A stretch of 59,567 nt of DNA, filler included, from Sluysia triapertura (Eukaryota), in assembly GCA_046118255.1 (NCBI GenBank). It is 4 parts of 4 records of this genome, joined end to end, with 100 filler letters (N's around TTAATTAATTAA, not from the genome) between each part and the next. Parts side by side here need not be neighbours in the genome. Positions count along the whole stretch, not along the records: positions 17,188 to 33,435 come from JBJNIA010207812.1; 3 more parts are not named here. One strand, written 5' to 3'. Below are positions 6,811-56,324 of the stretch, in pieces. Numbering within the stretch: the stretch's first letter is position 1; every line of letters starts with the position of its first letter. The notes under the pieces are model-generated. The model was not told where the DNA came from, did no database searches, and was given only the letters and a program-made list of their open reading frames with translations. The position numbers and the translations under genes are program-made.

Positions 6811-9281
6811 GGAAAAATACGTTTTTATGAATAAAGTTTGAATGCAAAATGTTATGGCAAAGTTGTGACTTTTATGTGATGGTTTAAATAAGATATTTCG
6901 ACGAATATACATTTTGACGATTGCATGCAACGAAAGCTGTAGTATTGAGAAAAGTCAAATTTTAATTAACTCTTAATTTTTTATGTTTAGAATGATGAAA
7001 ACATAGTTTGATTAATAACAATAACTGAATAACAAAATTAAATTAGTCTGAAATCTCTATATATTTTTAATAATGACAAATTATCACAATAATATAAATC
7101 AATTAATAAAATGTAACATAACTAAAAAAATGTTTGTACCCGTATAAATATAACAAAACAAATATAACAGGCGTGGATTAACTAACCAGAATCACGCAAC
7201 AAAATATGAAAAATTACTAAACATGAAGCTTTTATCATAATGTTTGCCATGACCCCGTTGAAGCAGAATTGATTTAACAAGCAAAGTTGTACTTTAATAA
7301 TATACTCTGCAATTTATGAGTGTATTTTAGTAAAAATGTGATCGCTGGAAATGCAACGTAATTATGTTGTGTAATTATTTTGTGTTATTATTTTGAGTCG
7401 GTTATAACCCAACCAATTTTAACAATTAAATTTCAATTATAATTTCCGCCAAATTTCTGTTGACTTCCAATTTATTATCTTCCATCAATTATCAAAATAT
7501 AATGAGATTTGTGGCAAACAGTTCTTGTATATAATTAGCATAATAAAATCGAAATTTAATAAGATTATCATAGTAGTGTTTACTTTTTAAATAAAATATT
7601 AACTTAAATTAACATAAAATCATTTAAATAAAAAACTTCTTTTCCATAATAAATAAATAGTTGTGATAGATAAATTGTTAAATTAGTAAGCAGTGAAACC
7701 CAAAGTTATAATATTTGATCAGCATTATGAAGAGATCCTTTGTCAAAAAATGTATATAAAATAAATTAGATTCTATTATATAAATCAGTAGAATCTTAAT
7801 TCACTCGAGAAACGAAGTTTAAAGTCACCATAATTGATTAGCAATAGGTTTAGACCCTCCATTAAAATGTCCAGCAATTAAATATCAGTATACATATCCA
7901 TTTAATATGACGAATTTAAAAGTTAAAAGTTAAGCTATTAAAATTTAACTTTACACGTTAAAATTGCTCACTTACAGTTACAGGTATACCAACTATGCGT
8001 TGTAAACCTTTTACTATAATGGCACAATGCTAAAATTACAAATGAAATTATAAATATCGAACAAATTTTTATAATCTAATAAGATATCAATCGATTAGAT
8101 TTTCTGAATACTCTGTTCGAATTGAATTTTCGTGTGCGTGAACAAAAACTTTTAACTTAATGTTTATCTTTATATTACTCTGTGGCAAATTTACGTTGTA
8201 CTACTAACAAGCAAATTTTTCAGGGTCTTTTTTATATCTATTTTATAATTGTCATTTAATAACTTAATATAATTGAATGTAAATATATTCATTATTATTA
8301 TTACTTTTGCAAGATGTTTTTCTTTTTCTTTAACCTAAACAAAATATCTTTAACTTGAAAAATATCTAAGGATCAGTTCGCCTAATAAACACGATTTACG
8401 TTTATTTCTACGTGTTATTAGGGTTTCTAGAATCAGTAAAAGCATTTTAATAAGCAGAATACCTTGACAGTATATGTTTCAATGCTATTTTACATGAGCA
8501 AAATATTAATATTAATGAGACTATCTAACTCTTGCTTATTCGGTGATGCAATGTTCAATAAACAATTTAAGTTTATAGTATGTTAATGGTTTTCCAAAAC
8601 TATTAAAACGTAAATTAATAATTATGTGCGATTAATTATAAATACTTAAGCAATACTTAGTTAATAATTGTTAGAGCTAAAATTTATTAAATCGATTAAA
8701 AATACTAAAAGTAAAATGAACAAATAAATCATTTACAAAACATGCAACTAAATCATTAAGACTAATCAAATTGCTTACAAAATTACAACAATTTAACAGA
8801 TAAAATGTAACATGATATTAAGAGAGACTTATTATTTTATGACTATAAGATTATTTTGAGCTAGCTTTTAAGAATTTAACTTCTCTATTTAAAAGAGAAA
8901 CTTGATGAAACTTACAATAATAAATTTACACAAAGCAAAAATAATTGTTGAGTATTACAGGATCAATACAATTATTTTTCTTCTTGATTAGTGTTTACTG
9001 TTATTAAAATCTAATTTCTTCTAAAAATTTGTACTGTCAAAATGAGAAAAAGTTTACTTGTATATATATATTTCATAACATAAAGCCACAACACAAAAAT
9101 TGATTCAATTAAACAAAATCAAAAACTTTTGTAATTTATTAAATTCATTATTGAAATTCATAATTAAAATTATTAAATTTTTTAATAATTAAACATTCTT
9201 AAATAATTTATAATAAAAATTAAATATTTACAATTAATTTTTTAATTTCAATAATTATCAAAAAATTATTTTAATTACAAA

Positions 9282-9317
<36 letters not shown>

Positions 9318-11769
9318 ATGCATTTATTACTTTAAACTTTCACAATTTTTTTAAATTAATTTAAGCATTCTTTTATTTTCCTTCTAATTTTATTAATTTT
9401 AACTTCTTTAAAAAGTAACTTTCAATCACATTTTAAGCCTGCGTGTGAAAATATCATGCAAATCGTCTCTGAATTTATCATAGTAAAACAAAGAATGGAT
9501 GATTTATGACACACTCTTTGGCCAACTCAGGTTTATTACTTCGTCAGGATTCAGTAGCTAAAAATAGAATAATAATAATAACAATCATGAAAATATAAAA
9601 ATAATATTAAGAAATCATAACAATAATAATGTTAATGTGGCAAACAACACTTTATATATTGTATAGACAAATACTTTATTGTGCAGACATTTAATATTGA
9701 TTCAATTATTGATTATTTTATTATTAGTAAAAACATTTTTGAAATTAATATTATTATTATTGAATTATTGAAAAACATTTTATTGAAACATTTTTGGAAA
9801 ATTTATCAAATATAAGTTATTTTATAAATTAAAAAATTATTAAATAAATTATTATTAACATTCTATTATAAAAAAATTGAAATTAATTATTAAACTAGCG
9901 AAATATTGAATTATTAGAATACTAAATTGATTTATTTAAATTATTAAAATATTAAATTATTTTGTTTATAGTATCAAGGTTAAGTTGAATTTTAATATAA
10001 AAACCCCAAACTTTTTAATTCCAAAATTTTTCACACAATTTAAAAATCTTTGTCGGAGGCTTATGTTTGAGAAAAATTTATCACTGGAAAAACCAAAACA
10101 TTATCCAATGCTTCGTTAGTCTTATTCATATAAGTATCACGCAATTATTTATTATTGCAGAGTAAGATTTACTTAAACTCTTGATAAAAATTTTGGTTAA
10201 CATTTAATTTGTTTACGAAGAAAAATAATTTTAAATTCTTATTCATATAAGATTATCAGTTAAATATAATCCTTTCTAAATTATTACTATTAATATTATT
10301 TATTATTAAAAGTTTACTATCTGTACTTTTAAAATCTTTTAAACTATATTAATATATTGTTTTGTTTATTATATTTTATTTAAATTTAAAAATAATTGAG
10401 TCACTAGGTTCATTTTAAAGAACTTAAGAAAAATCGTCATAAAAATCTTTTTGTTAATAGTTAATAATTAGAGACCAAAAGAAAAATCTAATCAATTTGT
10501 TAAAAATTGCATTTAAATAGCGAATCTGTGTAATCTAATACACATTTTAAAAATTAACCAATTTGATTTTTCCAGGTTCTATTTAATAAAGAACATAAGC
10601 AATATAACCATAATAAAGGTAAATTTAAATTTTACCTTATCATTAAACCAAACTTCTTAAGGTTCTTTTAATAAAGAACATAATGTTGTGTCTTTTATAC
10701 CTTTTTATTTTACAAATTATCAATTTAAAATTCAATAATTAAACAAATTCAGAATCTCGATATATTACTGATTGAATTTCGACAGCAATTTCCGTCTGTG
10801 TTCAAATTCAATCTCATTTTAATTATCTAAAGATAATAGGATTTGTGGTAAACAATCCTCTTATTTTCTTAATATTTAATATTAAAATTTAAAATCATTG
10901 TTATATTTCTATTATACTAATAACATAATTTGTCAACTTAATTTGAAGATAAAATTTATGAAATAATAAATCTATTTCTCACAGGGGTCTTCTGCATTCT
11001 GTAAAGTAAACTTATAATATGTTAAACTTTTCTTTTGATTATTATTACTATTACTTGTTATAATATGTGAATACTCTTTGCTAATTATCTTATGCTGTGC
11101 TGAAATTATTTTATTTTATTACTTTATAAAGCTTTTTGTATATTTTAGGTGAATTCTCCATGATACTGGACTTATTCACTAAAGGACCAGCACATAGATT
11201 TTTGCAGCGTCAAAAAGAGTATGAAGATAGTCAGTAGCAAGATGTATGCCTTTTCTAATTTATTTAGTTTACTAAATTTTTGTTAAATATTTATGCCAAA
11301 TATCCTAATTAAGTACAAACAATGAAAACAAGTAAATTTCTTAATATAATTATTAAATAAAGCAAAATATCGATAGTATAATCAACTATAATAAAATCAA
11401 CAAGTCTTCTAATTTAATCGTAAAAATATAATGACGTTAACAAGGAATTCAACAAGGTGCATTATTATTTAAATTGATAATTGTTGGGGTTTATTATTAT
11501 TGAAAATTAACTTTTGAATTAAATTTAGTTTGTGCTTCTTAAAAAAACTTATTAGCTTTATCAAATTCTTATTTTTTAAATTTATACGGTATTGAAAACT
11601 TTGACAGACATAACTAATAATAAAGAAGTTAAAAATACGCGAAGATTTATTTAAAACATATTTAATATTTATTATTTTAATCCCGTAGATGCCTTTTAGT
11701 AGTTCACACGTTTCGCCATCTAAATAAAAATCAAAGATTATAATATCATTGGTAAAAGGATAAAAATTA

Positions 11770-12875
11770 TTTACTTCACGTTCATGTTATTGGTAATCCA
11801 AGACTTTCGAGGATATTTTCAAGTTTGGAGAAGTGATCAGCATATGTGTAACTTCAGTATTAAGAGTTGTTAATTGTCATATTGGCAATAGATCCCAGAA
11901 TTCATGCAAATACCGCTTTGGTCACTGTTGAATGGGCAGAACGCCGTTTTGATAAGTTGACTCGAATTTGGTTCGCTTATAGTATTTGTACATTTTCTGA
12001 CCGCAAGCTTCTTGGAAATTACTATAATGTAAACTGCTAGCACAATATTTTCTTTACTTTCTAATATATCATAATTTTGTGAAATTGTTTGATAATCATT
12101 TGCATCGCTTAGTACTTTATATTCTAAATATAATCGTTTATATTCATCATAATCTTCACTAGAACTGAGAATGGCATTTGCATGTTTTGAGAAAGAATGT
12201 CACCATCATTAATAATTACAATAGATTCCAAATTCATTGATTCATCATCAATATTAAGATCTTCGAACAAATTAATAGAGATATTGTTCAAGTATACATT
12301 GTGGTCAATTAAATTATTTGATACTATATCTAAGTCCGATAATTTTAACGCATCTGAATTAACCCATGTATTTAGTAAAGGTGATATTATATCTAGATGG
12401 AAATGTAAATATTTAATCAACTTTAACAGTACACAAAATGTTTCAACCATTTCAAGATCTCTTAGAAATAAATTCTTAGAAAAAAGTGATTTAGAAATGT
12501 CGTATCAGATTTTACTGTTTCAATATAACGATTTAATGTTAATTCATTGATAGAATACAGAATCCAAATTTTACTGTAACCAATATTTGTAACAGGGTTA
12601 CTATCATCATGTAGGTATTCACAAAATTCTTTCGAAATTATCTCTTTTATAACTGTCCAAAATTCGTGATCAAAAACCATCTTTGGTATATTAAACTTTC
12701 GGAAAATAATAGATGTACATCTAAGTTGCTGATGAAGGAATATTGCTTCTTTGGCAAAACAGAAATTAAATGAATAAATAAAATCTGAATTTTCTTGGTT
12801 TCTACCTTCTTTATACGTTAATATAGCTTGTGCAGATCTATTCAAGTATTCTATAATTGACTTCTTTTCATTCAT
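11770..12875 (-). pseudogene. RUN-domain protein (PLEKHM1-like N-terminus), frameshifted: pseudogene or homopolymer assembly errors
   Basis: ORFs 12462-12875 and 12124-12450 join if one T is added to the run at 12480-12485, giving ...EAIFLH...FW...TNIGYSKIWILYSINE..LNRYI...FLRDLE...LHFHLDIISPLLNTW...LKLSDL, which matches the RUN domain pattern of PLEKHM1. A second 1-nt shift near 12186-12189 appears to restore a continuing frame (SSSEDYDEYKRLYLEYK...). Confidence 0.7.
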
Positions 12876-13294
12876 TTAATTTAACGTTTAATATTTACTT
12901 TTTAGATTATAAACAAAATGTTGAAACTGTCTTTTTTATTTACTACTAGAATAATTTATTGTTAATTTTGAGAAAACTATCATTACATAAATATGATAAA
13001 TAAAATAATAATACATAAAATAATAAATTTTGTGTGCAACAATTACTACATAAATTTGAGTTATATAATAAATTTTGTGACAATGTACACTGTGACAACT
13101 TTGATTGGCTGTCCAACCAAAAATATAAAAGTAATGAGCAAAATCATTCTGGTTGGACAAGCACTAGTAACATTAAAGAAAATGACTGACAGATGAGCCA
13201 CCATCAATGTTGATGAGAATTTATACACAGTGATAAGCAATGTCAACACTGATGATGGTAATTACTGATTTGAATAAAAATTAATGAATAAATA

Positions 13295-13570
13295 AAATGA
13301 TAATAATAATAATGATAATAATAACAACAATGTTATTACCATTATTAAAGCATAAATTCTTGTAAAAAATTATACATGATCTTTCTTCTAATTCTTTACT
13401 TTCTAAACATATTAAAAGTTAAAGATAAAGAAAATTAAAAATGATAATAATAATAACAACAACGTTATCGTCATTATTATTATTATAAATACATAAAGTC
13501 CTTAAATTCTTTAAAACATGATCTTTCCTTGTACTCTTTAATATTTCTTAAATATTTAAATTGTTAAAAT
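13295..13570. repeat. Diverged tandem duplication (2 copies of about 135-140 bp)
   Basis: AAAATGATAATAATAATAA...ACATGATCTTTC... occurs twice. Confidence 0.7.
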
Positions 13571-13594
13571 AGACGAGCCTTAAAGAAGTGAATT

Positions 13595-14282
13595 TGTGAT
13601 GTTACAGCTTAATGTTACGTGTTTTGGATAAGGTTTTAAGATGTAATAGTGACGCTACTGTTATAAGATAATTCGTAAAGCGTTTTAGTGTAATTTTACA
13701 TGCTATTTACCAATTTTAAGTAAAGATAAGTTTAGGTGTTAAATATTTTAAAATAATATAAATTTTTTATGTGGATATTAAAATACACCTTGATGTTTTG
13801 GATGAAATAATGTTTTTAGCTGAAGATGAGCTTGCGTACTGATTTAAATATTTTGGAATAGCATGAATGTTAAAAATGAATGATAAATATATGTTGGAGT
13901 TGTGAATGAAAATAATGTTTATCTGTTTGGAGATGTGACTTAAAATGCATTGAACAAAAGTGTAGTTTAGTGTATGAAAAGGAGATCAATTATGGCCTAT
14001 GATTTGGTACATTGTAAGAAGTAATTGTGTGATGTGGGAAAAAGATATGATTTTAGCTATGTTTGTATTGAACTGTGAATTTAAAAATGTGAGTTGTAGA
14101 TTTTAAGGGTGAGTGTTATATTGAAACATATGATTTTGATTATATTGAGATAGAATTATGTAAAAAATGTTATAAATGAATTTTTAAATAATATATTGTA
14201 TATTATGAAAGTGTTATGTGGTATTGTAATGTTTAAAAAAATTTTAATAAAATTTGTTAAAAGTAATATGTTAACCACTAAA
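13595..14282. repeat. TG-skewed, C-poor solo-LTR-like repeat (related ends at 1-167, about 40540-40821 and about 58380-58668)
   Basis: Strong G/T strand skew ending in a shared motif: GTTGGCCACTACA (155-167), GTTAACCACTAAA (14270-14282), GTTGGCCACCATA (40810-40822), GCTAGCCACCACA (58656-58668). Confidence 0.4.
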
Positions 14283-16455
14283 ATCACAACGAAAAAATCA
14301 AATGTAAAATTATAATAATTTTATAATAATAATATTAGGGTTATTAATTATTATTATTATTTTTTCTAATAATAATTTATTTTCATTCAATATATATTAG
14401 CAAAATTATTTACTAACAGAATTATATCATTTTATTTAAAATTATATTATTGAAAATAATTCTTTAATGAACTAACAGATTTAAATTGTTTAATAAATTG
14501 ATTCCAAATAAATCGTTCTTTCAAAACCACAATTTTATTAAAATTCTATATCAGTGTAACAGTGTAAAGTTCGAAATTTGTGTGAATCACTATTTATACA
14601 TCTTTACATTTCTATTTTAGCTACATTTTATTTTTATAATTTCAATAATTTTATATTTTCAATAATTAAAACTGTTGGGCAAAGATAGATATAAAGGTTC
14701 AAGATTCAGGATAAAAGAATAAGATAAACATTATTGAGGAATTGAGATAGGGATTATGATGAATTGTAATGATAAGATAAGTATATGAAATACTCGAATC
14801 AACCTTTTATAAGGTTTATTTGTTAAAATATTAAAGTACAATTGTTAATTAACTTAATTAAAAATTATTTAATTTGATAACTCAATAAAAATGTTTGCTC
14901 ATGATATAATGTTGAGTTTTATTATTTGTTCTAGTAATGAAGTGTTACGAAGCACGTCAACGCAGATAACGTAAAATTGGTTATTTTAATTAATTTTGTA
15001 ATTAAAAATTAAAGATTGAGCATTAATAAAGTATATATCAGATAAAAGCTTATAAAGAAACAAGTCAGTATACACTATTGAGATTAACGTGTTACGTCTG
15101 ATATAAAATATTGTTATTAAAAAACGTTTTATACCAGATTATAAATATAGGTAAATTATGATGATGTATTTTTATACCTGTTTGTGTAATTCCAATTGTG
15201 ATATTAAATTGTGATTTGATTATTTTAAAGAGATATCGGCTTGTTCTTCACAAAACGCATTATCTTCAGATAGTTGTCAGGCAATGTAAAGGCATAAAAC
15301 CGACTCTAAGAAAATAGCATGTGTGGTAGACATGCAAAATAATTAAAGTGAATTCCCGACTACCTGACAATTATCTCGATATTATATAAAGAGCTAACTT
15401 TTTACATAAAAACACAACAACAATCCAGAAAAAACGATAACAGTAACAAGTGACAAATTAGTCAAGAACTTCTTGCCATAAGGACTCTGGATTCAGTTGA
15501 GTTGTGCATAACACTAATTGAATCTTTTTCTTCAGCAATAACATTAAGACAAAATAAGTTCACGTGGTTAGTAGAGAGTTAGGAGAGTTAGTTTTGTCTT
15601 TATTATTATTATATATTTTATTTTTCGTAACGACATTTATGTTGTGTAACTCCTGCGATTTTTAAAGAATTAGACAATAACTTATTAAATAATTTGATTT
15701 AAAGAAGTGTTTTAACTATATAAAAAGTTCGATTTATATAATTGTGATATAAAGAAGTTGATTTATAGAATTGTATTTGTAATATAAAGATTTGGTTTTA
15801 TTTGATTTTTAGTTATTAAAGAGGGATATCATTAAACGAAAAAACACAACAAAACAATAATTTAATAATTTTAATAATAATAATAATTTTAATAAAATTT
15901 TCAATAAAATTATAATAATTTAATAATAAACTTAATAATTAAAAGTAAAATTATCCAAAAAAGAAATTATAATAATTTAATAATAAACTTAATAATTTTT
16001 ATTAATTTTTTACATTAAAATATTAAAATATTACATCAGAAAACATTACATAAAATAAAAAACATAAAAATCATTGCAATTTCAACAAGTATTTCAGTAA
16101 TTACAATTAATTTTCTACAATTTCATGTGCAACATTAGAGCAACATACATTCTTAACTTTGTGGATCAGTACAAATACATCAGTAAATTATAAATGCATT
16201 GGTACATGTATTATCCCAAAGCCAAATATACTAGAATTCAGAAAAATTCCTAATTGCGTTCTTTTATGCTTTCGTTGGGAAAAGTCAGGTAGTGAAGGAA
16301 TAGGTTTATTTAATTGATATTTTAGGGTTTCGTAAGGCGTAGTAGATGGTGTAATAGTAAGTTTGAATTCGAAGAAGTTTCTAAAAGATCCTTTAAAGAA
16401 AATATGATTGAAGTTCGACATATTGCACAATTTGGAAACTTATTAGTGTTAATAT

Positions 16456-17187: not shown

Positions 17188-18341
17188 TTATTTACAAAAA
17201 TTTCAATATTATCCTTTACAACTATCCTTTACAACAATATTATCGAACAATATTATTCTTTACATATCTAATAATAATAAATTAAATAATCAAAATAGCA
17301 TTAATAATAATAATTATTATTAATTTTCATGAATCATTAGTTCAAACTTTCATAATTTCAAAAGAGAATATTGGTTACGAAATAAAATTTCATAAAGATC
17401 AAAAAATGTCTAATGATTCATTTCAGCTAAAAAATTATTAATAAAATAAAAAATTTAGTTAAATGTTTTCATGATATCGTAACTGAAACGTGTGTAAAGT
17501 TATTATATGAACAATTTGTACAATTTATGAACTCGTGGATGAACTTGTTTTTGTTTTCTTCTAGGGGATATATCTCGACCCCTTTAATACAAAACTTATA
17601 ATGTTGTACCATTGCTTAAATAAAATTAAATGTAATGATAATTGCAAAAATTAAAATTAAGTTTCAAAGTATGGAATGGAAGTTGAAATAAACTCTGCGA
17701 TCCTTATCATGGATTATTCAGATTGAAATAAATCTGAACCAAAGTAGGAAAATTCAATACATCTTAATTAAATTCATAACTAATAATAACTCTTATAACT
17801 ATCTTAAAAAGCATTGCAGAGATTATGCAAAAGTCTAAGATCAAACGTGGTCAAAGTTGAAAAAGTAATGCTAAATACGTTTAATAAAGAAATTTGAAAG
17901 AGATTCTATTAACAAAATGCTGAATTTTAAATTACATAGAGAAGAAAATTAGTTAGAAATTGCTTCATAAGTAACAATCATATAAGTTTATGTTCAAAAT
18001 TTTTAAACAATACAATTGAGGCACATTCAAATTTAATAATATTCATTGAATTTATATCAAACATAATTTCAAAAGGTACTCACTTATTACGTACTATTTT
18101 TATATCATGGATTTTGCAGTCAAATCAAGAAAATAATGCATTGTCTAAAGACATTTATTTTAATATTGACATTATCAATTTTATATACTTCAATTAATTA
18201 ATAATTATCTATTTCTTTGGTGTATATGACTTACATTTTATAATACATGACAATATTTCATTTATTAGACGAATTTTTAATAAATTATTTAATTGCAAAA
18301 TTGTAGTGATAAAAATTAATGATAAATATGTTAATATTCAG

Positions 18342-21300
18342 TTTGTACAACATCAATTTCTACGGCAATCAATTATGAAGCAATAGCACCAAATAATGTA
18401 TTGAATTTTGTAGTCACAGTTTACGACAGTCCTACAAACACTGCTAATAAAAAATCGACAACTCTATCTTATACAGTAACGGTTAGTATAGTAAACAATA
18501 TTTTTCTAATACTACTACAAGATGAGTTCTTTTAAACCTTCCAATACAAATTAAGGAAATTGATCGAATAAAATAAATTTGGAAACATAAATTGAAATTA
18601 TTTGATATACACTATTGTAGTATCTTTTACCACAGCGTGTCTATATTCTTTGATCTTTTAATCAAATTAAACCTTTTTTTATCAGAGTATTATAAAATAT
18701 TGTGTTTATTTTTTCAAGTAATATATAATCCTTTCAATTCATGCAAGGTATTAATGTCTTTTAAGGAATTATAATATTGAATAATTTCAGTCATTTTAGA
18801 GTGAGAAAGAAGCGTATTGTCATTCATAGAACTAATGAATGTTGTCGTTTTTATTTTTCAGAAAGATATTAGTTTTGCTGCAAAACTTTTAATAATTTAT
18901 TTGATTCATTTGTATATATTTGCTTCTTTTTCCAGATTATTAATTGGGAATTCACCAAAAATGGCAAAAACAACCACTAAGTTAAGCCGAAAATATTCTG
19001 GAAATTATTGTCCGAAAATAGGAAAAAAATCCATAAAATTTTAATAATAGTTACAAATTTATATTTATCGTATATGTAGAAATAAAATTTCTGTTAGTCT
19101 TTTTTTAAAATTTTTACAAGAATATCAAACTTAACTTTTTTTAAAATAATTAATGTAAAAGGGCAGAAGATTATTGTTTTAATATCAAATTCATACTTTG
19201 CAAGTTATAGTAACTCACTTTTATATATTGTTTATTGCTTTTGTGCATCATTTTAGTAAACATAATTTATTATTTCAGATAACAGATGTTTTTGATGTGG
19301 CTCCTGTATTTTCAAGTGCTTCATATACTTGTTCTGTTGAAGAACAAACCACAACTGCTTGTACGGTATCAGTATCAGATGTAGAGACTTCGCATGTACC
19401 AGCTGATGCTCTTACGTGTACTTTATCAGGTAAAATTTTAATTATTATTTGCTGAATATTCTATTGTTAACTGATATAATTCAGAGTAATATAGCTATAA
19501 CTGGATACTGTATAACACGAAGTAAACAGATAATTAGCATAACAGATAATACAAATGTCTAAACTTTTATTAAATGTATTTGTTACATGTACCATGCAAT
19601 GTAATAACGAAATTTATTTATATATTGGTTTTAAAATTAATATTAATACTAATTTATTTCTTGACTGGGTACAATAATAAAATGTATTAAGTAGCAAGTA
19701 AGAAATTTAAATTTTGAATTAATATATTGAAGTAATAGGCTCAGCAAGACAAATAATACAAATGTCTACGTTTTCATTAAATGCGAATGTATTTGTTTCT
19801 AATACCACGCAAAATAGCAATGTAATAACGAACTTTAAGAATTTATCTATATATTGGTATTAAAATTAATATTAATACTAATTTATTTCTTTAGTGCGTA
19901 CAATAATAAAATGTTTAAAAATGTATTAAGTAGCAAGTAAGAAAATTAAATTTTGAATTAATATATTGAAGTAATAGGCTTATTTATTTTCTAGGGGCCA
20001 AATTTTATTGTATACAATTACCATTTTACTAAAATCAGTGGTACCTAGTAGAGGTTTCTATAATAAACAATTTCACGTTTTTTATTATAATTTTTATGTA
20101 AGAAATCATACATCCCATTTTAGACATTTAAATATATTTAATAGTACAATTTAAATATACAAATATTTAATTTGATTAATAATAATAATACAGGGCCTAA
20201 TGTAGCTCTTTTTGAGATTTCATCTCCAAATTGTGAAGTTAAACCAAAATTACCTGGAATAGATAGAGATGCTTCTGGAGTAGCGTCAAGTTATCCAGAT
20301 CTGATTATTAAAGTAAGAATTGAATGTTTATTTAATATTTGTCTTGTTTACATAAAATTGTAACATATAAACTGAATTTAAATATTCGAAAATTTTCCTT
20401 CCGTTTCAAATTAAAATTAAACTTTTTCTTGCAATGAAAAAAATAAATATTTTCAGAATAAATTATCTAAAACATTTTGTTTATCTATATGTTTAGATAA
20501 ATGTTACTATTCTTCTGTACATAGTCATCAATAAGAATATTATCAAATTGTATGGAAAAAATTATTAAAAATGAAGTCGCTAAAATAAAAACCATTATTA
20601 TTATATAATTATTTAATTATTTTAAATTGATATAGTGTAAAAATTTTACAATGCACATATTCTTTAAAAATAATTAATGTTAAAATTAAAATTAACTTTT
20701 ACGTATTTTTACTAATTGAAATGGTTTTAAAAAGTATTTAAACGCATAATTTGTTTGAATAATGTGAATAATTATTCAATGGATCAAAAAATATTGACAT
20801 TATTACTGGAATTAATAATTTAGAAAATACTATTAAAAGACAGAAGAAGAATAAATATTTGACAATCAATGAAGAAAGTCATAATTTATAATTTTCATAA
20901 TTCATAATTTATAATTTATAATTTATAAAGTTAATTCTCGGTGATGAATAATTTGTCACATAACATCTTATCTTAAAGAATTCTACCGGTTACCAATAAA
21001 AATCGTGACTGTAATTAAGAAAATAATATTTTAATAATACTATTATAATAATAATTTATTATTATGTTGCATAATTATTATTATGACTTTACATTATAAT
21101 AATATTATTATTTTTTATTTTACATTATTATTATTATTATTGTTCTATTATTATACTATAAGTTTTGCTGTTTGTGAACCCTAATATTACCTTTTAATTT
21201 ATATATAATTGTCATATTAAAATAAGTTTAATGCTTATCAAAAAGATTTTTTGCATAACTTTTTTATTGCCATTTTGTTTCAATATTTATTTCGATATTA

Positions 21301-24300
21301 CTTTTGTAACAATTGTAACGCAATTTCATTATAGTTTTTATTTGTATTATTTTCTTTTAGTGCTTTGAAAAAAATAAAAAAATAAAATAATAAATAAAAT
21401 AAAATTTTAACAATTTTAGGCAACAGATAAAGGTGGTAATACGGCAACTGCATCATTGTCAGTAACAATAACAGATAAGAACGATAATATTCCAGTTTGT
21501 ACTACAACAGCAATAGATATAACAAAAGATGAATCATTTTCAGGTGGATTAGTATCTTTAAGTTGTACAGATAAAGATGCCAGTGTTAATGGACAATTAC
21601 AATGTACTACTTCACCATCAGATAGTAGATTTACTGTAACGTATAATTCTGCTAGTAAGTTAATAATTCGTAAATTAATATTTTTAGTATCTTCGTGTAC
21701 TATTACATTAAATGCAGCAATAGATTATGATGTTTTAACAACTAATCCAATAAAATATGATCTTATTGTTAACGATCTGGCAACTGATACAACACAACGG
21801 AAAACTACCACAGTTTCATTTACATTAACGGTTAGTTAAAAAATTACATTATTAACAATTTGTTTTAATTAAATATAATTTTATTTTACTTTGCCAGCAA
21901 TTATATGAAAGCATGATTAATACTTTTTTGTTCTTATTCTTGTTATTTGGATATTGATATTTTTAATATTTTAAAAAGCTATTTTTATAGGAATTTTATT
22001 TAAATTTATTTTTTTAATCATTTGATAAATTTTAATTAATTATTTTATTATTTCTCACATTATTTAACCCAAGTATTGTTGATTTAGATAACCGATTTAA
22101 ATGATAATGCACCAAACTGTGGCGCTAGTCCCACTTTAACTGCAACTCAACCGGAAACATACACAGGTTTATAAAATAATAAATTAGTGATTAAATAATA
22201 TAACAATAAATTCTATCAGGAATAATATTTACTGCAAGTTGTACTGACGCAGATTCTGGAGTGAATAAACAATTAACATGTTCGAGTAATGATGCTAGAT
22301 TTACAAGTACTTTCAGTACTGGAGGTTAAATATTATTATAATAAAATACATTAATCAAATTGTCAAATAAAATGAATTATTTTTGTTTTAGTGTGCACTA
22401 CAACCTTACCAAGTAGTATCAATTATGAAGGACTGGCAAATAATGTTTTGAATTTTTTAGTAACAGTAACAGATAGCGCTGTTACAGATAAAAAGTCAAC
22501 AACATTGTCATATACAGTAACAGTAAGACTTATTTTATTTAAATATTTACTTTTTGAAACATTTAACTAATTAAATTATGTTTTATTTGATATTAAAATT
22601 AATAGGCTTATTTCAAATGAAACAAAAAGCATCGAATTATTAGATAAAAATAATTAAAACAAATCAAAATCAACTAAATTTTCTTATTTTTAAATTTTAG
22701 CTTCGATTCATTGCAGTGCATGGCTTAAAATGTGCAATAACTACATTAAGCTTATCGTAATAAAATTGTACTACAAATCGATAACACAAAGAGTTGAGTA
22801 TCTCTGAGTAATATTTGTTTCAGTATTTTATTTCGTTGAGTAATAAGTAACATCCGTATTTACGTATTTGTTTCTCTAAAACACAAATTTCACATTCTAA
22901 CAAACATTTTTGATTATTTTGTGCCTTATCTTTCTGTGTGTTTATTTGTTATATCTCAATTTTGCCGTTGATAAAAGGTTTTAATACTAAAAACACCGTT
23001 TTACTATTTTCGAAAATATAAAATTAATTTAATATCGGCGTTACGCCATAACATTTGAAATTGTTATATTTATTAATTGTTTTTATTATTATCATCATCA
23101 CTATTTGAAGGTTGATTCCTAATACAGTCGGACCCCGTATAACGCGATAGAATTGAAATCATTTAAGTCGTATATATAAGTGCTTAAATTATTAAAGGCT
23201 TAAGTATCTTTGAAAAATAAGAAATAGTCTTTTAGATACAACAATTAATAAAGAATACATAGTTAGTAATAAGTTGCATACTTTTTAAATTTAAAAAAGC
23301 TGCTGAAAAATTGTCAGATCATTGAAAGGTTATAAACAGAAATAAAATATTATTGACAAAAAAGGTATTTTGAGTTCTTATTTCATATTAGGTATTATCG
23401 CTATAATATTATTAAATATTTATTTTAGATAACAGATGTATTTGATGTAGCACCTGTATTTACAAGTGCTTCATATTCTTGTTCAATAGCAGAACAAACT
23501 ACAACTGCTTGTACCATGATATCAGTGTCAGATGTAGAGACATCACATGTACCAGCTGATGCTCTTACGTGTACTTTATCAGGTTTGTAAAAAAAACGTT
23601 AAAACTCTGAAAATCTATCAAACCCTTCAGTCATTTAAATTTTTGAGATGATATTTTAAAAATTTTCAATGTTATACAAATAATTGGACTAAAATAGAAA
23701 TGTTATTAATTAGAAAAGTCATTTTGCTCAATTATGTTTCACGTATTTATAATTAAATACTAACATTTGATTCAAGGGTTTAGTTTTCAACAATAAATCC
23801 ATAATAATCTTCATTTTTAATATCAGTTAGAAAAAGCTTTGCTATTTCAGGTAGCAAAATTGGTTTCATTTTCTTCTTTATATGAAACAATGCCAGCTTT
23901 TCTAATTCCAATAATACGCATTATTTATTATTATAAATTTAAATAAATGAGCTCAATTTTTATTGGATCTGTTTTACTTGTTCGGCTGAAATCATTCCTA
24001 ATGTAGATAATCATATTTATTATGAGATTCGGTCAGTAATTATTGAAAACTCTGTTAAAATAAACATTAACTCCGCTTTCAGATGTGATTTGGTTTGAAA
24101 CTAATATTTCTTTTTTTTCTTATCATATGAAGATCATATATTAGTAATATATAAAGATAAATTTCTAGCAGATAAGTTTTAACAATTTAATCTGTAATTT
24201 AAAAATTTTTACTATTTTCTTCAAATTGTAATAAATGCAATTTATTACTTTAAATATTAAAATTTATTTTTTGTTTCGATTTGTAACTCAATTTATTGTA

Positions 24301-27300
24301 GCACTTTAAATGAGTTATTTAACTCGTTATTACATAAACTCGTAATTTAAAATCAAATTCGAATAATGAATGACTATACATATACTTCATTATTAGACGA
24401 TTTTAGTGCATAAAATGTATTTTTATTTATATAATCTTTTATCAATTTAGGACCATCTTCACTTCTTTTCGAAATTTCAACAAATTGTCAAGTTAGACCA
24501 AAAGCACCTGGTATTGATCGAGATGCCACAGGAGTGTCATCAAGTTATCCAGATCTGATTATTAAAGTACGTAATAATTATTTTAAATTACCAAAGATTT
24601 TAAAATATAGTTTTTATGAATAATTGTTTATAATAATCAGGCAACAGACAGTGGAGGTAATACGGCAACTGCATCATTGTCAGTAACAATAACAGATGTA
24701 AATGACAATTTTCCAGCTTGTACTACAACAGCAATAGATATAACAAAAGATGAATCATTTTCAGGTGGATTAGTGTCTTTAGGTTGTACAGATAAAGATG
24801 CTAGTGTTAATGGACAATTACAATGTACTACTTCACCATCAGATAGTAGATTTACTGTAACGTATAATTCTGCTAGTAAGTTAATAATTCGTAAATTAAT
24901 ATTTTTAGTATCTTCGTGTACTATTACATTAAATGCAGCAATAGATTATGATGTTTTAACTCTCAAGTCAATAAAATTTGATCTTATTGTTAACGATCTG
25001 GCAACTGATACAGCTCAACGAAAAACTACCACAGTTTCATTTACATTAACGGTTAGTTAAAATTACATTATTTAACTATTTGTTTTAATTAGAGTTAATT
25101 TTACTTTACTTTTAAAATTCACTGAATTTTACACTGCGACTAATTATGTCACTCTTAATACTTTTCTTTTCTCTTTGACTATGCTCTTTAAGTTATCTTT
25201 GTTTTTGTTTTTGTGGGACGCTTATAGGATTTCTTTATTATATATTTATTTGTTAATTTTTATGCTCTAACAAATTTAGTAAATCTCAATTCTAATTTTT
25301 CAGCTTATTTATCTTTAAATTTTAACATTTATTTAACTTTCTGACACCTTATATTACAATTTAAATAAAATATTAAATTTATTTATATTTTTTGTTTTTA
25401 ATTTTTTAATATTTAATGAATTAAAAGACGATTTAAGACCTGAAAAAGAAACTTGTGTAAAATTCAATGGGCAATTTAATTTAATAAATAAAAAACACAT
25501 AATGTAACAAACATAAATTAAACAATACCAGATTAAAACAATAGTTGTTAAAATATTCGTTATTGTCGTATCAAAATTTCTCTCTATTGATCTTAATCAA
25601 TCTAATTGACTAATGTCTGAAGTTAATATTATTAAATCTGGAATTAACTCCACCAGTATTTCGCTAAAACTTTAAAATTATCATTTGCTTTTACAATTTT
25701 GAAAGCCAAAATTTTAAATGGTGGGTTTTATGTTTAAAGCAAAAAATTAATCACTGAATGAACATCAGGTGTTAAAAATGGCTTTAAATCTCAGCCTAAG
25801 ATTTTTATTACTTCACATTGCTGTATTGATATGGATATTAATTCATCCAAAGTTTTAACGAAACTTTGTAAAGTCATTTTATTATAATGAATTATGAAAT
25901 AAGTACGGTGTTTTATTAACATATTTTTATATAAACTTGTCATAAATTTACTCATAATTTTCTGATCCAATGTACCAAGATTATTAAAGCTGAAATAAAA
26001 ATTTAATAAAAAATTACTGCTTAAATATTTTAAATTAAATGATGTATCCATTAAATCACATTATTCTATTGAAGCGTTATCACTGCAATTCGATGTTTCA
26101 CTAAGATTTTGTGAACATACGGGAGCTAGTCGATTATAAATCACATTTAATTCTGTAATATTATTAGAATGTATCATTAATAAAAATGGAATACTACCAA
26201 TGTCACTTAGACAATTGTCAGTTAAATTAATTTTCATTATTGTTTATCGTACAATAAACTTTCTAATAACGTTCTAATATCTTTTCCATAATGAGATAAT
26301 TCTAATGTTACGGATATATTTATTACATGGAATCACGTTGTATTTTTTAAATTTATTTTTCTATAATACGTTCGATCAGTACTATCATTATCTGGTAATT
26401 TGTTTTCATCAGAAAATGATTGGATTAAAAATTCGGTAATGTTAATGTGCTATTAGATAATATCCAAATAAAACTTTCATTATTCAATCTTTTATCCACT
26501 TATTTATTTTTAATTATTATTTTTATCATAAGACAGATAAGTACAAATACAAACTTTTTACAATTTTAAATATTTCATTTTGTAACTTCACAGCAAAACA
26601 ATAAAATAGAAACAATATTTAGAAGTCTCTTTGTAATACATTTTATTAACGAATAAATAAAATATAACCTGTCGAATTCCAGTTGACATATCAAACAAGC
26701 TATATAAATATACAATTTTAATAATATCGTTAATGAATACAAAATTTTGGCAATAATAAAAATTGAAATTTATAAATATAAAAATCAAAGTTCTCAAAAT
26801 TGATTTCTGATCTGTATCATCTGTACTGAAGCATTCTTTTGATTTTACCATTACACTTAATTCAGAAATTAACTGGGCTTGACCATAAAATTGTTTAAAA
26901 TAATTTAGTTGAGTTTTTTCACATATTTGATTTATTGGAATTCGACCATTTGGACTTGATAATTATTTTCAAACTAGACATTGCAAATTATTCATTTGAA
27001 TGAAATTTACGATGAATTCTTGGAGAATATTATGGAAATGATTTATTTATGATGTTTATGTAAAATTGTAACAAACTAATACAGATTGCGTGCCGTGAAT
27101 AGTTTGTAATTAAATATTTGTGATAAATACGACATAATGTCAACGAGCAAGTTCAACATAAATACATACAAAAGTAAGAGAACAATATCGACATAACAAT
27201 AATGCTAACTATAATTTTAATTAAATATTAAATGAGTATAATAAATTGTCTGATTTTACAGTATATCATATTATAAAAATTGTGTTTGTATTTTATGTAT

Positions 27301-30300
27301 GTTATTTGTCTTTTTAATGTTTTGAGTTAGATTGTGCTGAAGTTTGTTTAGGATTTTATTAATAAGAAAGTGTTTGCTTGTGTTTGTAACTAGAGCGTTT
27401 TAATTTTGATGTACCGTTGCATGTCAGTTTTTTATATTTTAAAAAGTTTTTCTTTTATTAACTTTAACTTTATCGATTTAGATAACCGATTTAAACGATA
27501 ATACACCAAACTGCGGTGCTAGTCCCACTTTAATTGCAACTCAACCAGAAACATACACAGGTTTATAAAATAATGAATTATTGATTAAATTTTATTAGGT
27601 GCTGTATTTAGTGCAAGTTGTACCGATGCAGATTCTGGAGTAAATGCTCAATTAACCTGTTCGAGTAATAATGCAAAATTTACAAGTACTTTTGCTGCTG
27701 GTGGTTAGTAAAATTAAAAAATACTTATAATAAATTATTGTGTATAGTTTGTACCACATCAATTCCAACAGCAATCGATTATGAATCAATCATACTAAAT
27801 AATGTATTGAATTTTGTAGTCACAGTTTACGACAGTCCTACAAATGCAGCTGATAAAAAATCGACAACTCTGTCATACACAGTAACGGTAAGTTTAATTA
27901 AGTTATTTACAATAATCGTTTAATTTCAGATTACAGATGTATTCGATGTAGCACCTGTATTTACAAGTGCTTCATATTCTTGTTCAATAGTAGAACAAAC
28001 TACAACTGCTTGTACGATGATATCAGTATCAGATGTAGAGACATCACATGTACCAGCTGATGCTATTACGTGTACTTTATTAGGTTTGTGATTTATTATA
28101 TTAAACGTAATTAATATAGGTCCAAATGCAAATGCTTTCGATATTGCATCACCAAGCTGTCAAGTTAGTCCTAAAATACCAGGTATAGATCGAGATGCTA
28201 CTGGAGCAATTTCTGCCTATCCTGACCTAATTGTTAAAGTAAGGATATGAACTATTTCACGAAAAAAATATTCATAATCAATAATAATAATTATTATAAT
28301 TATAATTATAATTATAATCGGGTTAAATATACCAGGCTACAGATAAAAATGGTAACACAGCAACGGCCTCATTGTCAGTAACAATAACAGATATTAACGA
28401 CAATGCTCCAGTATGTAGTTCTGCAACAATCGATGTAACAAAAGATGAAACGTTTACCGGAACTTTAGCTACTGTAACATGTTCTGATAAAGATTACGGA
28501 GTTAATTCTAAAATGACATGTAGTACTGGAGATGCGAGATTTACAATTACATTTACAGATTTAAGTAAGTATTATTTAAAATGATTTTTAAAAATTATCT
28601 GAAATTAAAACTTAATACCGTCAAATTTTAAGCACATTTTATAAATTCTTCGTGAAATGCAATTAAGAGTATTCATTATAATCAATGAAAATATGTAATA
28701 TGTAATTCAAACCAGCAGAAAATCAAGTGATAAAACTTTATATTGATTCTGTTCAGTTAAATTTTACTCAACCTTGTGGAGGTCGCTGCTGATCTAAAAA
28801 ATACAAGCAAATTAATTTTTTAATACTCTTGTTTATATTCGACGTATTTGTTGGTTTCAGTGTAACACGTTGGAGACAACTCTAGATCAAGTTATAATAA
28901 TCACAAGCAAACACTAACACAAATCAACACATCTTACATGAAAAAGTTATTAAGTAACGCACAACATATCAAATCACTACACAATACATACAAAACATAA
29001 GCATAGTCCCAATAATATCATAATTGCTCAAATCTCATATACTATTATTGTTGCAAGATTTTGATTGCTGTTCTTTTTTATATATGTATGGGTGTCTCTA
29101 TGTACATATGTGTAAATCTTATTATTGTTACTATTATTTATCACTTCTGTTATTATTGTTTCTCCACTACTAGCACTTATACTATATTATTGTTATATAG
29201 GTATATTATTTCTGAAATGTAAAGAACATTATCTCCTTTTAAATACCATAAAATAAGTACTCAACATAAATCATACTTTATTCTGAATAATTTATTAAAT
29301 ATTTATTAAATTAAATTATATTTCTGAAACAGAAGAACTTTGTCTTTTTAAATATTTCATAATCTTTTAATAATTTAACATATTTTACAGTATATATTTT
29401 ACATTATTAAAAAATAATTAAAAAGTCAATTAGTACTATCTTATAAAAAATACAATACAAAAAAAGATTGATAATATTAATGAAACACTTGAATTTGTTT
29501 CAAAATTATGCTATAAATTAGTAGGTAGTAATTATTCTTATAATCAAGTATGATATTGGTGGTAAATTTTTACATTTTTATGAATCAGTGTCATTTTTGA
29601 ATAAATGTAATCTAGCAGCAAATTCAATAAATATTGTGTTGTGAAGTTATTTGTAATCCATTAGAAAATTATTATAATAATGATGAATGTGAACTCATTG
29701 TAGAAAAAAGGATTCGTTATTGGAGTTCATTGTGTAAATTTAGTCAAGAAATTCATCAGCAAATTAATCACGTGTTCTAAGTTACGTGTGGTTACAAATA
29801 AACTTTTAAAATCTAAACTTAATTGTCGAATGAATCGAAAATATTCATTAGTTATTTTAACTACAATTGCTATTATATGTTATTATGACTGTTCTGTAAC
29901 TAGTGGCGCATTATTAATACTTTTATTAACTCGATTAGTTTTTATGATTGTTTTTTACAATTTCATTTTAACACAAATGCGACTGTAAAATTCAGTGTAT
30001 TTAGATATTTACGTATTTTTTATTCATTATGTATTTTGACATTATTGTATATAAGAATAGTTTTTCTACTTTTTTACTTTCGATTGACGTAGAGCGATAG
30101 TATGTACAAAAAACAACATATTAACTTATAAAGTCAGCGAGTATTTGTTTTACTCTTTGTTTATTTATAAGTTTAATGTTTTACTTGCAGTCGTTAATTA
30201 GAATTTTTGTCGAAGACCACGGAGTTGTATTTGTGTTGTTAATAATAATTTTATATAGTAATCTTAAATCTTTACGTGCTTTATGTTTACGTAATTTTCT

Positions 30301-33174
30301 TGATTGCGATCACAATTATAATGCTAGAAAATGTTTAATCATTTATTGGGCCATTGAATTTTCAGCCAAAGAAAATAACTCCTAGCCATATGGTGAATTA
30401 CGATTAGGTCAATCATCAACAACGGGTGATTAATGATTTCCAATACAATTTGGATAGTTTAAAGAGTGTTGTTTATTGAAACAAACTTTTTGTTTAATAT
30501 AAAATTTCAGTTTTATTTTGTTTATTTAATGGAATCGTTCAAGATTTTGATATTTTGTTGTATACACGGCAAAATGTAAAGAAAAAGATATATAAAATTA
30601 ATGATTTGTTCAATATAATTTTTAATTCAAATAATAAGTACTTAAAATCTATAAAACCCACGACACATGTGTTATGTAACTTGTATATGAAAGATACACT
30701 CGACCTTCGCAGAGTTAATAATAAATATAATGTTAATAATAAATATAATAATAATAAAAAATGTCATTACACAAAATATTTGTAAACTGCAGTTCGATAC
30801 TCTTATGAAATGAAGTAATTAAAATTCTTTGTTGTTAAAAATATTTTAATTATTTTATAAAATTTATTATTTTAAATCTTAATAAATATTTAAAGTTAAT
30901 TCTACGTTTTTACCTTCACATTACTTGTTAACAATAACATCATTCGATATGCCAGATTAGAATGAATCAAAGAAAATTCAAAATTCGATAATATAAAATG
31001 TTAAAGATTATTTCGATGAATTTGTTCATTTTAATTTAAATATTAAATATACTTCTTTATTTAATTTTTCGGTTTGAAATATTAAGTTTAATTCGTTATT
31101 TTGATAATTATTATCAGATTTTACTTTCATCAGTTATTATTTCTTCCAATTAACAATCAATAATAATAAATTCGTAATACACTATGTAGAATTATTTAAT
31201 TCCACTGTTATTGAATTACAATAAGTTATAATAGCACCATTTGTTCAAAAAATGTTTCTGTTGTATCACTAATAATAGTAATTAATGTTATAATTCTAGA
31301 AAGTTCTACTTTTTACAGTATTTTTCGCTGTTGTTTTATTATGGCTGCTAATTTTTTGAAATTCATCCCATCATAATTAATTTCAATAATAGAGTTAAAA
31401 CTATATAAATAATTCTAATATATGTATTTTTGTAATTATTTATTGATTGGTCACATAATTTATTTATTTATGTATTGGTTTGCATTTGTGTCTGCTAGTA
31501 TTCATTTTTTTTCACTTCTATTTTATTAAAATCATATTTTATCTATTTCCAAATTAAGTAATGTGAATTTTGAATACTACAGATAATATTAGAAATTTAA
31601 ATTTAATTAGAGTTTGAATTTGAAATTAAAAATAATGTAATAAAATTAAATATAAAATGATGACTCACTCTATGTATAATTAAAAAATTTTAGCAGCACA
31701 TAAAATGCAATCGATTGAACAAATTAATTAAATAAACGTAAATGTAAGTTATTTTAAAAATTAAAGATTATTATTATCATTATTATTATTATATTTAATT
31801 ATAGCTTCAACTTGCACAATAGCTTTAAATACAGCAATAGATTATGACACCTTAAATCCAAAACAGCCAATTAAATTCGATCTTATAGTTAACGATTTAT
31901 CTACGAATACCGGAGATAGAAAATCCATAACTATTTCTACTACTGTAACTGTAAGTAAACACATAATTTAATAAATGAATTAATATGTAATACCTTTTTC
32001 TATTAGATAACCGATGCAAATGATAATACTCCAAATTGTGGTGCCAGTCCTACGCTTATTGCAACTAAAGCAGAAACATTTACAGGCGTAGTACTTAGTG
32101 CAAGTTGTACCGATGCAGATTCTGGAGTGAATGCTCAATTAACCTGTTCGAGTAATAATGTAAAATTTACAAGTACTTTTGCTGCTGGTGGTTAGTAAAA
32201 TATTTTAATAAAAATTCAAAAATACTCATAATAAATTATTGTGTTTAGTTTGTACCACATCAATTCCAACAGCAATCGATTATGAATCAATCATACCAAA
32301 TAATGTATTGAATTTTGTAGTCACAGTTTACGATAGTCCTACAAATGCTGCTGATAAAAAATCGACAACTCTGTCATACACAGTAACGGTAAGTTTAATT
32401 AAGTTATTTACAATAATCGTTTAATTTCAGATTACAGATGTATTCGATGTAGCACCTGTATTTACAAGTGCTTCATATTCTTGTTCAATAGTAGAACAAA
32501 CTACAACTGCTTGTACGATGATATCAGTATCAGATGTAGAGACATCACATACACCAGCTGACACTATTACGTGTACTTTATCAGGTTATATTTATTGTCA
32601 AATAAATGTGGTTTAATATTTTTTGCACATATTTCTTTTAATATTATTAATATTTAAATTCCAAATTACCGTGAAATTAACTCTATTAACTTTAGTTCCT
32701 ATTCTATTCACTATTCAATTAATTTTTGTTTAATTTCAATATTCTTGCATACATTAAATATTAAAACAAATTATAATTTCTAGTTATCGAGTTAGATTTA
32801 TTTAATTTTATATTGCAAATAAGAATGTCATCAGAAATTACAAAAATATAAACCAAAGTTCTGAAATATGCAAATGAGTAAAATTTATTATTATTTTATT
32901 GCTCTAAAATTTATATTAAAGAATTTTCTAAAATGTGATTTTTATTTCTTCTTTCATTTAAAAAGGAAAATTTTTGGATAATCTGTAATAAGTACGAAAA
33001 TGTTTTTTTATAATAACATTATTTTAAATGTAAAACATATTTATTTTCATTGTAGGACCAAATGTTAATTTATTTGATATTGCTTCTTCAAGCTGCCAAG
33101 TTAGTCCTAAATCACCTGGAATCGACAGAGATACTGCTGGTGTTTTATCTAGTTATCCAGATCTAATTATAAAA
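18342..33174 (+). CDS. Cadherin-repeat protein, partial (about 10 complete Cys-containing cadherin domains in tandem A-B-C modules; N- and C-termini not found)
   Basis: 23 AG..GT exons read by hand, all phase-compatible (3320 nt): 18342-18481, 19279-19429, 20194-20312, 21420-21654, 21688-21830, 22088-22166, 22220-22324, 22392-22522, 23429-23582, 24451-24566, 24641-24875, 24909-25051, 27482-27560, 27599-27703, 27748-27887, 27930-28083, 28120-28238, 28336-28564, 31805-31950, 32007-32190, 32249-32388, 32431-32584, 33056-33174. Cadherin Ca2+ motifs recur: ITDxNDNxP, CTDxD, IDYD/IDYE/IDRD, ATDxGG. Confidence 0.92.
19546..19980. repeat. Intronic tandem duplication (2 copies of about 200-225 bp)
   Basis: ATAATACAAATGTCTA...ATATATTGAAGTAATAGGCT occurs at 19546-19740 and 19753-19980. 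Confidence 0.85.
23125..23148 (+). mobile_element. Tigger/pogo-like terminal sequence (single end)
   Basis: TA followed by CAGTCGGACCCCGTATAACGCG, a typical pogo/Tigger TIR pattern; partner end not found. Confidence 0.45.
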
Positions 33175-33318
33175 GTAAGAAATTAAATTTTATATGAAAT
33201 TTTGATTCTTTGGTGTAATTTGTAAAACTTTGTATCAGGATTTAAGATTTTAATCAATTATACAAAAATTACAAATAATTACAAATAAATTTTATTGAAC
33301 AAAATGTATCATTTAAAT

Positions 33319-33435
33319 CAGTGGTGTCAAAGTGGCGGCCCGTGTATTTACAAACAACACCAGGATAGGTACACGAATATTCATCCGTTATTTTGACGAT
33401 GATCAAGCTGGATTAATTAAATTTTTAATTCATTT
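33319..33435 (+). mobile_element. hAT (Charlie/Buster-like) end running into a gap
   Basis: CAGTGGTGTCAAAGTGGCGGCCCG resembles hAT-Charlie termini. Confidence 0.5.
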
Positions 33436-56215: not shown

Positions 56216-56324
56216 ATAATCTATCTTTCACTAATCTATTGATCTGCAGTTGGACGATTCAAGCAAATGAATATTTTAGCACTTCTGTTACAAAAATCGA
56301 TTAAGAAAATTTTGTTGTATAAAG

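Follow-up and report, generated by a model that had tools for sequence, protein, structure and literature searches.

Here we analyse positions 17188-33435 of the window, that is, of a 59,567-nucleotide (nt) stretch joined from parts of the Sluysia triapertura assembly GCA_046118255.1; this piece corresponds to JBJNIA010207812.1. We propose, with a probability of about 0.8, that the piece, whose AT-rich source organism is probably an invertebrate, belongs to the interior of a very large gene of the cadherin superfamily, in which a unit of three extracellular cadherin (EC) domains of types A, B and C is serially repeated, and that this A-B-C unit was multiplied long ago and later patched.

Exon model and the three-domain module

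Exon borders were set from the sequence by reading the + strand and were then verified by script. The resulting model consists of 23 exons on the + strand at 18342-33174, the first and last coordinates matching exactly those of the initial annotation of this DNA. All acceptors are AG and all donors GT, the donors of the cadherin exons being mostly GTAAGT or GTTAGT. Once spliced, the model measures 3320 nt and forms a single open frame, 1106 codons long and free of stops, and the unbroken frame over 23 exons that had been claimed before was thus borne out by the script. The piece has 23% G+C, without gaps, and G+C content is 35% in exons vs 21% in introns. The 22 introns range from 33 nt to 3240 nt, sizes of 33-58 nt being common. 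We compared the model with the piece itself by local tblastn, over the 1154 nt upstream (17188-18341) and the 261 nt downstream (33175-33435) of the exon span and over the two long introns, and this revealed no further cadherin exon on either strand. As the flanks of the piece hold no extra exon, the gene is cut at both piece edges.

The translated model, when cut at the inter-domain motif, yielded eleven domains in the order C-A-B-C-A-B-C-A-B-C-A. An identity matrix confirmed this order, which the initial annotation had already proposed, with 56-93% protein identity between domains of the same type and 24-49% between different types. Copies of A are 79-86% and copies of C 70-93% identical; domains B1 and B2 share 92%, and B3 shares 56% with each of them. 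Between types, A is 24-35% identical to B or C, and B is 40-49% identical to C. Since the domains group by type and not by position, the A-B-C triplet predates the multiplication of the unit. In our reading, B and C, which share one intron position, are sister types, and the triplet itself is ancient. Whole modules are 85% (1-2), 77% (2-3) and 69% (1-3) identical at the protein level. Self-matches of the model fall at offsets of 321-324, 645 and 969 amino acids (aa), copies one period apart being more alike than neighbours of different type, and DNA repeat finders and self-BLAST independently recovered the same copies.

The repeated unit comprises seven exons, about 975 nt and about 324 aa, and is present head to tail at least 3.4 times. 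The exon sizes previously reported as repeated (154/119/235/143/79/105/140 nt) were found again, in exons A1, A2, A3B1, B2, C1, C2 and C3, respectively, with small departures in A1 of copy 1 (151 nt), A2 of copy 2 (116 nt), A3B1 and B2 of copy 3 (229 and 146 nt) and C3 of copy 1 (131 nt). The module had been described as one of eight exons, but it has seven, as that same list of seven sizes shows. The seven exons keep identical phases in every module copy, with one intron missing in module 3, where C1 and C2 form a single exon of 184 nt (79+105) at 32007-32190; the C1|C2 intron of this module has been precisely lost. The site of this loss coincides with the left edge of a tract 94-98% identical between modules 2 and 3. 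The module has phase 0 at both ends and is droppable without a change of frame, in agreement with the frame symmetry that had been attributed to whole modules. The frame is also kept by the groups A1+A2, A3B1+B2 and C1+C2+C3, and by exon C2 alone.

Along the piece, the array starts with exon C3.0 (18342-18481, +, 140 nt), the second half of a type-C domain, which has AG/GT borders, keeps the frame and is 88% identical at the nucleotide level to C3.2 and C3.3; the exons preceding it would lie past the piece edge. The modules that follow are likewise on the + strand, with AG/GT borders and a continuous frame. Module 1 (19279-22522; domains A1, B1 and C1) has seven exons: A1 at 19279-19429, A2 at 20194-20312, A3B1 at 21420-21654, B2 at 21688-21830, C1 at 22088-22166, C2 at 22220-22324 and C3 at 22392-22522. 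Module 2 (23429-27887), also of seven exons, has A1 at 23429-23582, A2 at 24451-24566, A3B1 at 24641-24875, B2 at 24909-25051, C1 at 27482-27560, C2 at 27599-27703 and C3 at 27748-27887. Module 3 (27930-32388) has six exons: A1 at 27930-28083, A2 at 28120-28238, A3B1 at 28336-28564, B2 at 31805-31950, the fused C1+C2 given above and C3 at 32249-32388. Module 4 is represented by its start (32431-33174), with A1 at 32431-32584 and A2 (A2.4) at 33056-33174; the donor GT at 33175 starts an intron truncated by the piece end.

Cadherin identity and domain features

The queries of the database searches were single exons or the in-frame read-through of module 2, at 24641-25051. The 33-nt intron inside domain B of modules 1 and 2 is in frame and has no stop, and therefore 24641-25051 could be searched as a continuous sequence of 137 aa. 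The two 33-nt introns (21655-21687 and 24876-24908) are identical to each other and, if retained, would insert 11 residues in a loop of domain B. Against all PDB chains (phmmer), the read-through matched more than 60 cadherin chains, headed by CELSR1 (E=3.2e-17) and Pcdha7 (1.5e-14), with protocadherin chains at 1e-14 to 1e-8 and, lower in the list, cadherin-23, protocadherin-15, Fat4, Dachsous (protocadherin-16) and classical cadherins. The two best alignments cover the D-x-N-D-N-x-P linker, the A-x-D-x-D-x-G-x-N segment and strands A-C. These matches to CELSR1 and protocadherins uphold the cadherin identity assigned in the initial annotation, and all named clusters among the protein-language-model look-alikes carry the cadherin domain PF00028.

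A HMMER search over 1.84 billion representative proteins returned 2319 matches at E<=0.001, 66 of them at <=1e-30, in proteins of 800-8000 aa with 7-45 matched stretches each. Named matches include Fat4-like and cadherin-23-like proteins of cnidarians, molluscs, amphioxus, a hemichordate, a sponge, fishes and a flatworm, as well as a protein of the choanoflagellate Monosiga. The best single-exon matches reached only 35-42 bits and were scattered over phyla, and the best identities, 30-40%, were distributed across many cadherin subfamilies. Since none of the 2319 matches exceeded 40% identity, this library holds no orthologue and the array is lineage-specific in this sense, as had been supposed. 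A word-index search with the 137-aa read-through gave no match, its target length window (about 75-240 aa) being one that excludes giant cadherins.

Domains B and C carry all canonical calcium motifs (x-E-x, D-x-D, D-R/Y-E and D-x-N-D-N-x-P), and the A-to-B and B-to-C linkers are canonical D-x-N-D-N-x-P sequences. The C-to-A linker is degenerate, with both Asn replaced in all four copies; judging from these motifs and from what is known of the family, each module would give the rod one joint that is poor in calcium and possibly flexible. Four Cys per domain stand at fixed positions in all 11 domains, making 12 per module and 41 in total, and they probably form two disulfides in each domain. 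In B and C, three of these Cys occupy the places of the canonical Phe (PxF), Ala (A-x-D-x-D) and strand-C Tyr, and the fourth precedes the D-Y-E motif. Although Ser+Thr make up 29% and Asn 6% of its 1106 residues, the model lacks any N-x-S/T sequon. A shuffled model is expected to contain 18, the probability of finding none being about 0.0015 per module, and the cadherins that we fetched for comparison have a median of 11 sequons per 1000 aa.

Age of the copies and alternative explanations

Identity between copies changes from exon to exon. Modules 1 and 2 share 92-94% identity in A3B1, B2 and C1, exons that are 66-81% identical to those of module 3. Modules 2 and 3 share 94-98% in C2, C3 and the A1 that comes next (for A1, between copies 3 and 4), with C2 and C3 of modules 2/3 being 70-81% identical to those of module 1. 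Exon A1 is 87-97% identical in all copy pairs, but A2 only 71-79%. Self-BLAST, repeat finders and synonymous divergence (dS) delimited two young tracts on the + strand. One of them, at 21418-21892, is 93% identical to 24639-25112 (dS 0.12-0.26) and takes in A3B1, the 33-nt intron, B2 and some 60 nt of the intron that follows, resuming in C1 (22041-22201 vs 27435-27595). The other, at 27465-28086, is 86% identical overall to 31991-32587 (dS 0.03-0.09) and spans C2, C3 and A1 of the next module, reaching 98% over 300 nt (27710-28009 vs 32211-32510), two introns included. According to self-BLAST, intron homology between copies is confined to these two tracts and the other homologous introns are unrelated. 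Homologous introns measure 33/33/3240, 257/2430/56 and 764/868/36/471 nt, and the module spacing is irregular (3.2-5.4 kb).

Whereas dS is 0.03-0.26 in the young tracts, it goes from 0.6, through values above 1.3, to saturation elsewhere, at 66-80% nucleotide identity. Copies 3 and 4 show synonymous differences at 1/38 in A1 vs 17/28 in A2 (Fisher 1e-7); at the other edge of the same tract, dS of copies 2-3 jumps between exons C1 and C2 with p=0.005, and the jumps flanking the tract of modules 1-2 have p=0.01 and 7e-5. Because dS swings between 0.03 and saturation in adjacent exons and most introns are unalignable, our data indicate that the array is old and has been patched by gene conversion or unequal crossing-over. 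The recent origin claimed in the initial annotation therefore holds for two tracts of about 0.5 kb (dS 0.03-0.26) but not for the rest of the array, where dS lies between 0.6 and saturation and introns are unrelated; whole modules do not show uniformly low dS together with alignable introns. The ratio of nonsynonymous to synonymous divergence (dN/dS) was 0.09-0.5 in 29 of the 30 computable pairs, which is indicative of copies that are all still coding and under purifying selection.

The history that we envisage begins with an A-B-C unit multiplied long ago by unequal crossing-over. The introns would then have drifted in sequence and length through repeat insertions, and gene conversion or renewed unequal exchange would later have patched neighbouring copies, over tracts of about 0.5 kb placed without regard to module borders. 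Conserved motifs, intact splice sites and purifying selection (dN/dS 0.1-0.5) indicate that every copy is meant for translation, and the copies would most likely be read one after another into a single long ectodomain. By analogy with the family only, the function might be adhesion or that of a long extracellular tether. It is rather unlikely that the locus is a length-variable one evolving in concert, whose modules vary in number from individual to individual and are skipped or chosen in transcripts, and whose four-Cys, sequon-free EC domains make up a lineage-specific tunable tether or recognition molecule.

Of the two long introns, the one between B2.2 and C1.2 (25052-27481, +) has 2430 nt, its counterparts in modules 1 and 3 having 257 and 56 nt, respectively. 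On the - strand inside this intron, at 25794-26237, there are two open reading frames (ORFs) of 58 and 86 aa, in the same frame and with one stop between them. One antisense intronic ORF has a weak match to LRR_6 (Pfam, E=0.026), and the 86-aa ORF had no relative in the word-index protein search; the pair may be a decayed fragment of a leucine-rich-repeat gene. The intron between A3B1.3 and B2.3 (28565-31804, +) has 3240 nt, vs 33 nt in modules 1 and 2, and contains high-copy repeats. Apart from the weak LRR_6 match, Pfam searches on the ORFs of the long introns and flanks gave only noise, and no transposon domain was found in the ORFs of the 3240-nt intron. A local tandem duplication of about 230 nt, 79% identical overall with sub-blocks at 91-98%, lies at 19536-19980, in the A1.1-A2.1 intron.

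One public sequencing run, probably from the source sample, contains the stretch (82% of sampled words) as short Logan contigs. Depths in these data are sums over contigs dominated by repeats and are not usable as copy numbers; read in this way, the repeats of the 3240-nt intron have summed depths of 2,780-15,980 at 28800-29399 vs about 10-18 for single contigs. The repeat zone at 28800-30000 shows many loose ends and joints, with summed depth up to about 16,000. A very high-copy repeat (33200-33435, no strand assigned) lies at the right piece end, in the intron after A2.4, with a summed depth of about 90,000 at 33200-33399; it probably explains the assembly break at this end. Rfam and tRNA scans of the whole piece, this repeat included, gave no match. 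Logan contigs reproduce 27400-27637, 28035-28266, 28427-28913 and 32521-33335 with 0-1 differences, the last of these in one contig of 815 nt that runs across the A1.4-A2.4 intron with zero differences.

Several points weigh against an internal fragment of a single giant cadherin gene. The signal peptide, membrane anchor and cytoplasmic tail fall outside the piece, and that the 23 exons are all spliced together in a single transcript is suggested only by frame, splice signals and homology. No Logan contig crosses either long intron, as repeats break the contigs, and the joins A3B1.3-B2.3 and B2.2-C1.2 would thus rest on the original assembly. Furthermore, Pfam PF00028 scored 14.4-15.4 bits on the read-through, below its cut-off of 28.8, and single exons gave nothing, low scores that are explained by the introns splitting every domain. 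AlphaFold2, run on a shallow paralogue alignment of 13 rows, returned a mean pLDDT of 32 and the model was unusable.

Would the modules rather be alternative cassettes, with one or a subset of the A-B-C units entering each transcript by skipping or mutually exclusive choice, the outcome would be isoforms differing in length or specificity and not one long constitutive rod. Phase 0 at both module borders makes any whole module droppable in frame, RefSeq models of a three-domain array of Nematostella differ by exact 303-aa modules (4407, 4104 and 3801 aa), and the A2 exon, the most divergent between copies (71-79% at the nucleotide level), could diversify a surface. On the other hand, the introns between modules 2-3 and 3-4 have only 42 nt, typical of constitutive short-intron splicing, what repeats in series is an entire unit of seven exons, unlike the Dscam cluster of one exon type, and dN/dS gives no sign of diversifying selection. 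We thus consider a cassette arrangement unlikely. Even less probable, in our view, is an assembly artefact, be it a contig chained from separate paralogues or from the two haplotypes of a shorter array, or one into which a longer array collapsed. The exons follow each other in perfect order, strand, phase and frame over 22 of 22 junctions, which is unlikely for chance chimeras, and the two halves of B3 flanking the 3.2-kb intron are equally old in divergence. Outside the patches the copies are too different to be alleles: intron lengths are up to 100-fold apart (36 nt vs 471-868 nt for one homologous intron), A2 exons are only 71-79% identical and B3 is 66-71% identical to B1/B2, exceeding allelic difference. 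Such an artefact would nevertheless be favoured by the very high-copy repeat at the piece end, by the repeats of the long introns that break independent contigs, and by the tract pair 98% identical over 300 nt, which is prone to mis-joins by assemblers.

It is very improbable that we are dealing with a decaying, untranscribed and pseudogenised array. The piece contains no start, end or expression evidence and its introns were invaded by repeats, as a pseudogene might have it, but 3320 nt of coding sequence with 35% G+C stand among introns of 21% G+C without a stop or frameshift, all 45 splice dinucleotides are intact, dN/dS is far under 1, old pairs included, and the motifs and all 41 Cys are positionally conserved. 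A fragment of a giant cadherin gene, with an old and locally patched A-B-C array, thus remains the explanation that we favour.

What we provide is an annotation, at the level of exons, of one section of a giant cadherin gene; the genome is very AT-rich and had not been annotated. It illustrates a route by which such genes grow, an old three-domain unit being multiplied and then locally homogenised. Its value is mainly comparative, as another independent case of modular expansion of a cadherin ectodomain. The four Cys per domain, the degenerate calcium linker of each module and the lack of N-glycosylation sequons are of possible structural interest. The array leaves our understanding of cadherin evolution unchanged, and the annotation, although good, is unsurprising.

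Comparison with other cadherins and known repeat systems

We surveyed 155 fetched proteins for internal repeats by comparing 110-aa windows with the rest of the same protein. Internal off-diagonal identity was at least 50% in 65 of them, at least 70% in 46 and at least 90% in 32, in a sample that is biased to repetitive proteins since summed scores favour them. Many of the surveyed cadherins have multi-domain periods, of 303, 320-333, 421-437 or 770 aa, which shows that internal repeat arrays are widespread in giant invertebrate cadherins. The premise of the initial annotation that cadherin repeats are usually highly diverged from each other is valid for classical families, but the rarity that it implied is not, given the 46 of 155 proteins with at least 70% internal identity. 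A literature search found no paper on higher-order cadherin repeat arrays.

The closest analogue is Nematostella vectensis XP_048581438.1 (cadherin-23 isoform X1 / protocadherin Fat 4 isoforms X2-X7). As in S. triapertura, its ectodomain has a three-EC period (303 aa) built from a tandem multi-exon unit with whole modules in frame; 79% of all its residues are identical at a lag of 303 aa, and its RefSeq isoforms of 4407, 4104 and 3801 aa differ from each other by exact deletions of 303 aa. The locus (OW051987.1, 5161467-5226211) contains at least 11 multi-exon units with a genomic period of about 1.9 kb. The opposite strand of this locus has a separate gene call of 765 aa (55805-59165). Copies in Nematostella are regular and 98-100% identical, whereas those of S. 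triapertura are 69-85% identical and irregularly spaced, with mostly unrelated introns and only patches that are young. The two arrays share only about 24-30% identity and therefore arose independently.

Near-identical internal repeats are also found in other giant cadherins, such as Nematostella LOC116612238 (437 aa), a cadherin-23-like protein of Littorina (about 333 aa), another of Protopterus (about 770 aa) and a Fat1-like protein of Physella (101 aa). They have in common with the S. triapertura gene the tandem multiplication of one to seven EC domains in one gene, recent in their case, but they differ in period and lineage and none is an orthologue (<=40% identity). The Fat, Dachsous, CELSR and cadherin-23 proteins of vertebrates and flies, which gave the best solved-structure matches, likewise have long EC chains and DxNDN linkers, but each of their EC domains has diverged on its own and the four-Cys pattern is absent from them. 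As the piece contains only EC exons, the comparison leaves aside the parts that define the Fat, Dachsous, CELSR and cadherin-23 families (EGF/laminin-G, GAIN/7TM, the seven-pass or single-pass membrane region and cytoplasmic motifs), and no orthology with them was shown.

Part of the Cys pattern has parallels among invertebrate Fat4-like proteins (Patella, Corticium, Branchiostoma, Haliotis and Mya), which have Cys at the PxF Phe and at the A-x-D-x-D Ala of the same domain. This pair occurs in 199 of the 2991 EC matches in the fetched cadherins, including 18 of the 19 domains of Patella XP_055959112.1, and Cys at all three scored positions, as in B and C of S. triapertura, occurs in none of the 2991.

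The highest identities to our query (39-40%) belong to two bacterial cadherin-like adhesins, which also have near-identical tandem domains. They are, however, single uninterrupted ORFs in another genomic context, whereas the S. triapertura gene has 22 introns of spliceosomal type. The adhesins, of 3215 and 2897 aa, have repeats of 94-101 aa that are up to 100% identical; the gene of the latter adjoins PorP/SprF and has CHU_C, an indication of type IX secretion.

Outside giant cadherins, the 7D-cadherins had EC1-2 duplicated to EC3-4, in a single ancient duplication. The super-repeats of titin and nebulin, although made of different folds, show the same kind of higher-order periodicity, derived from the duplication of a multi-exon block within one gene.

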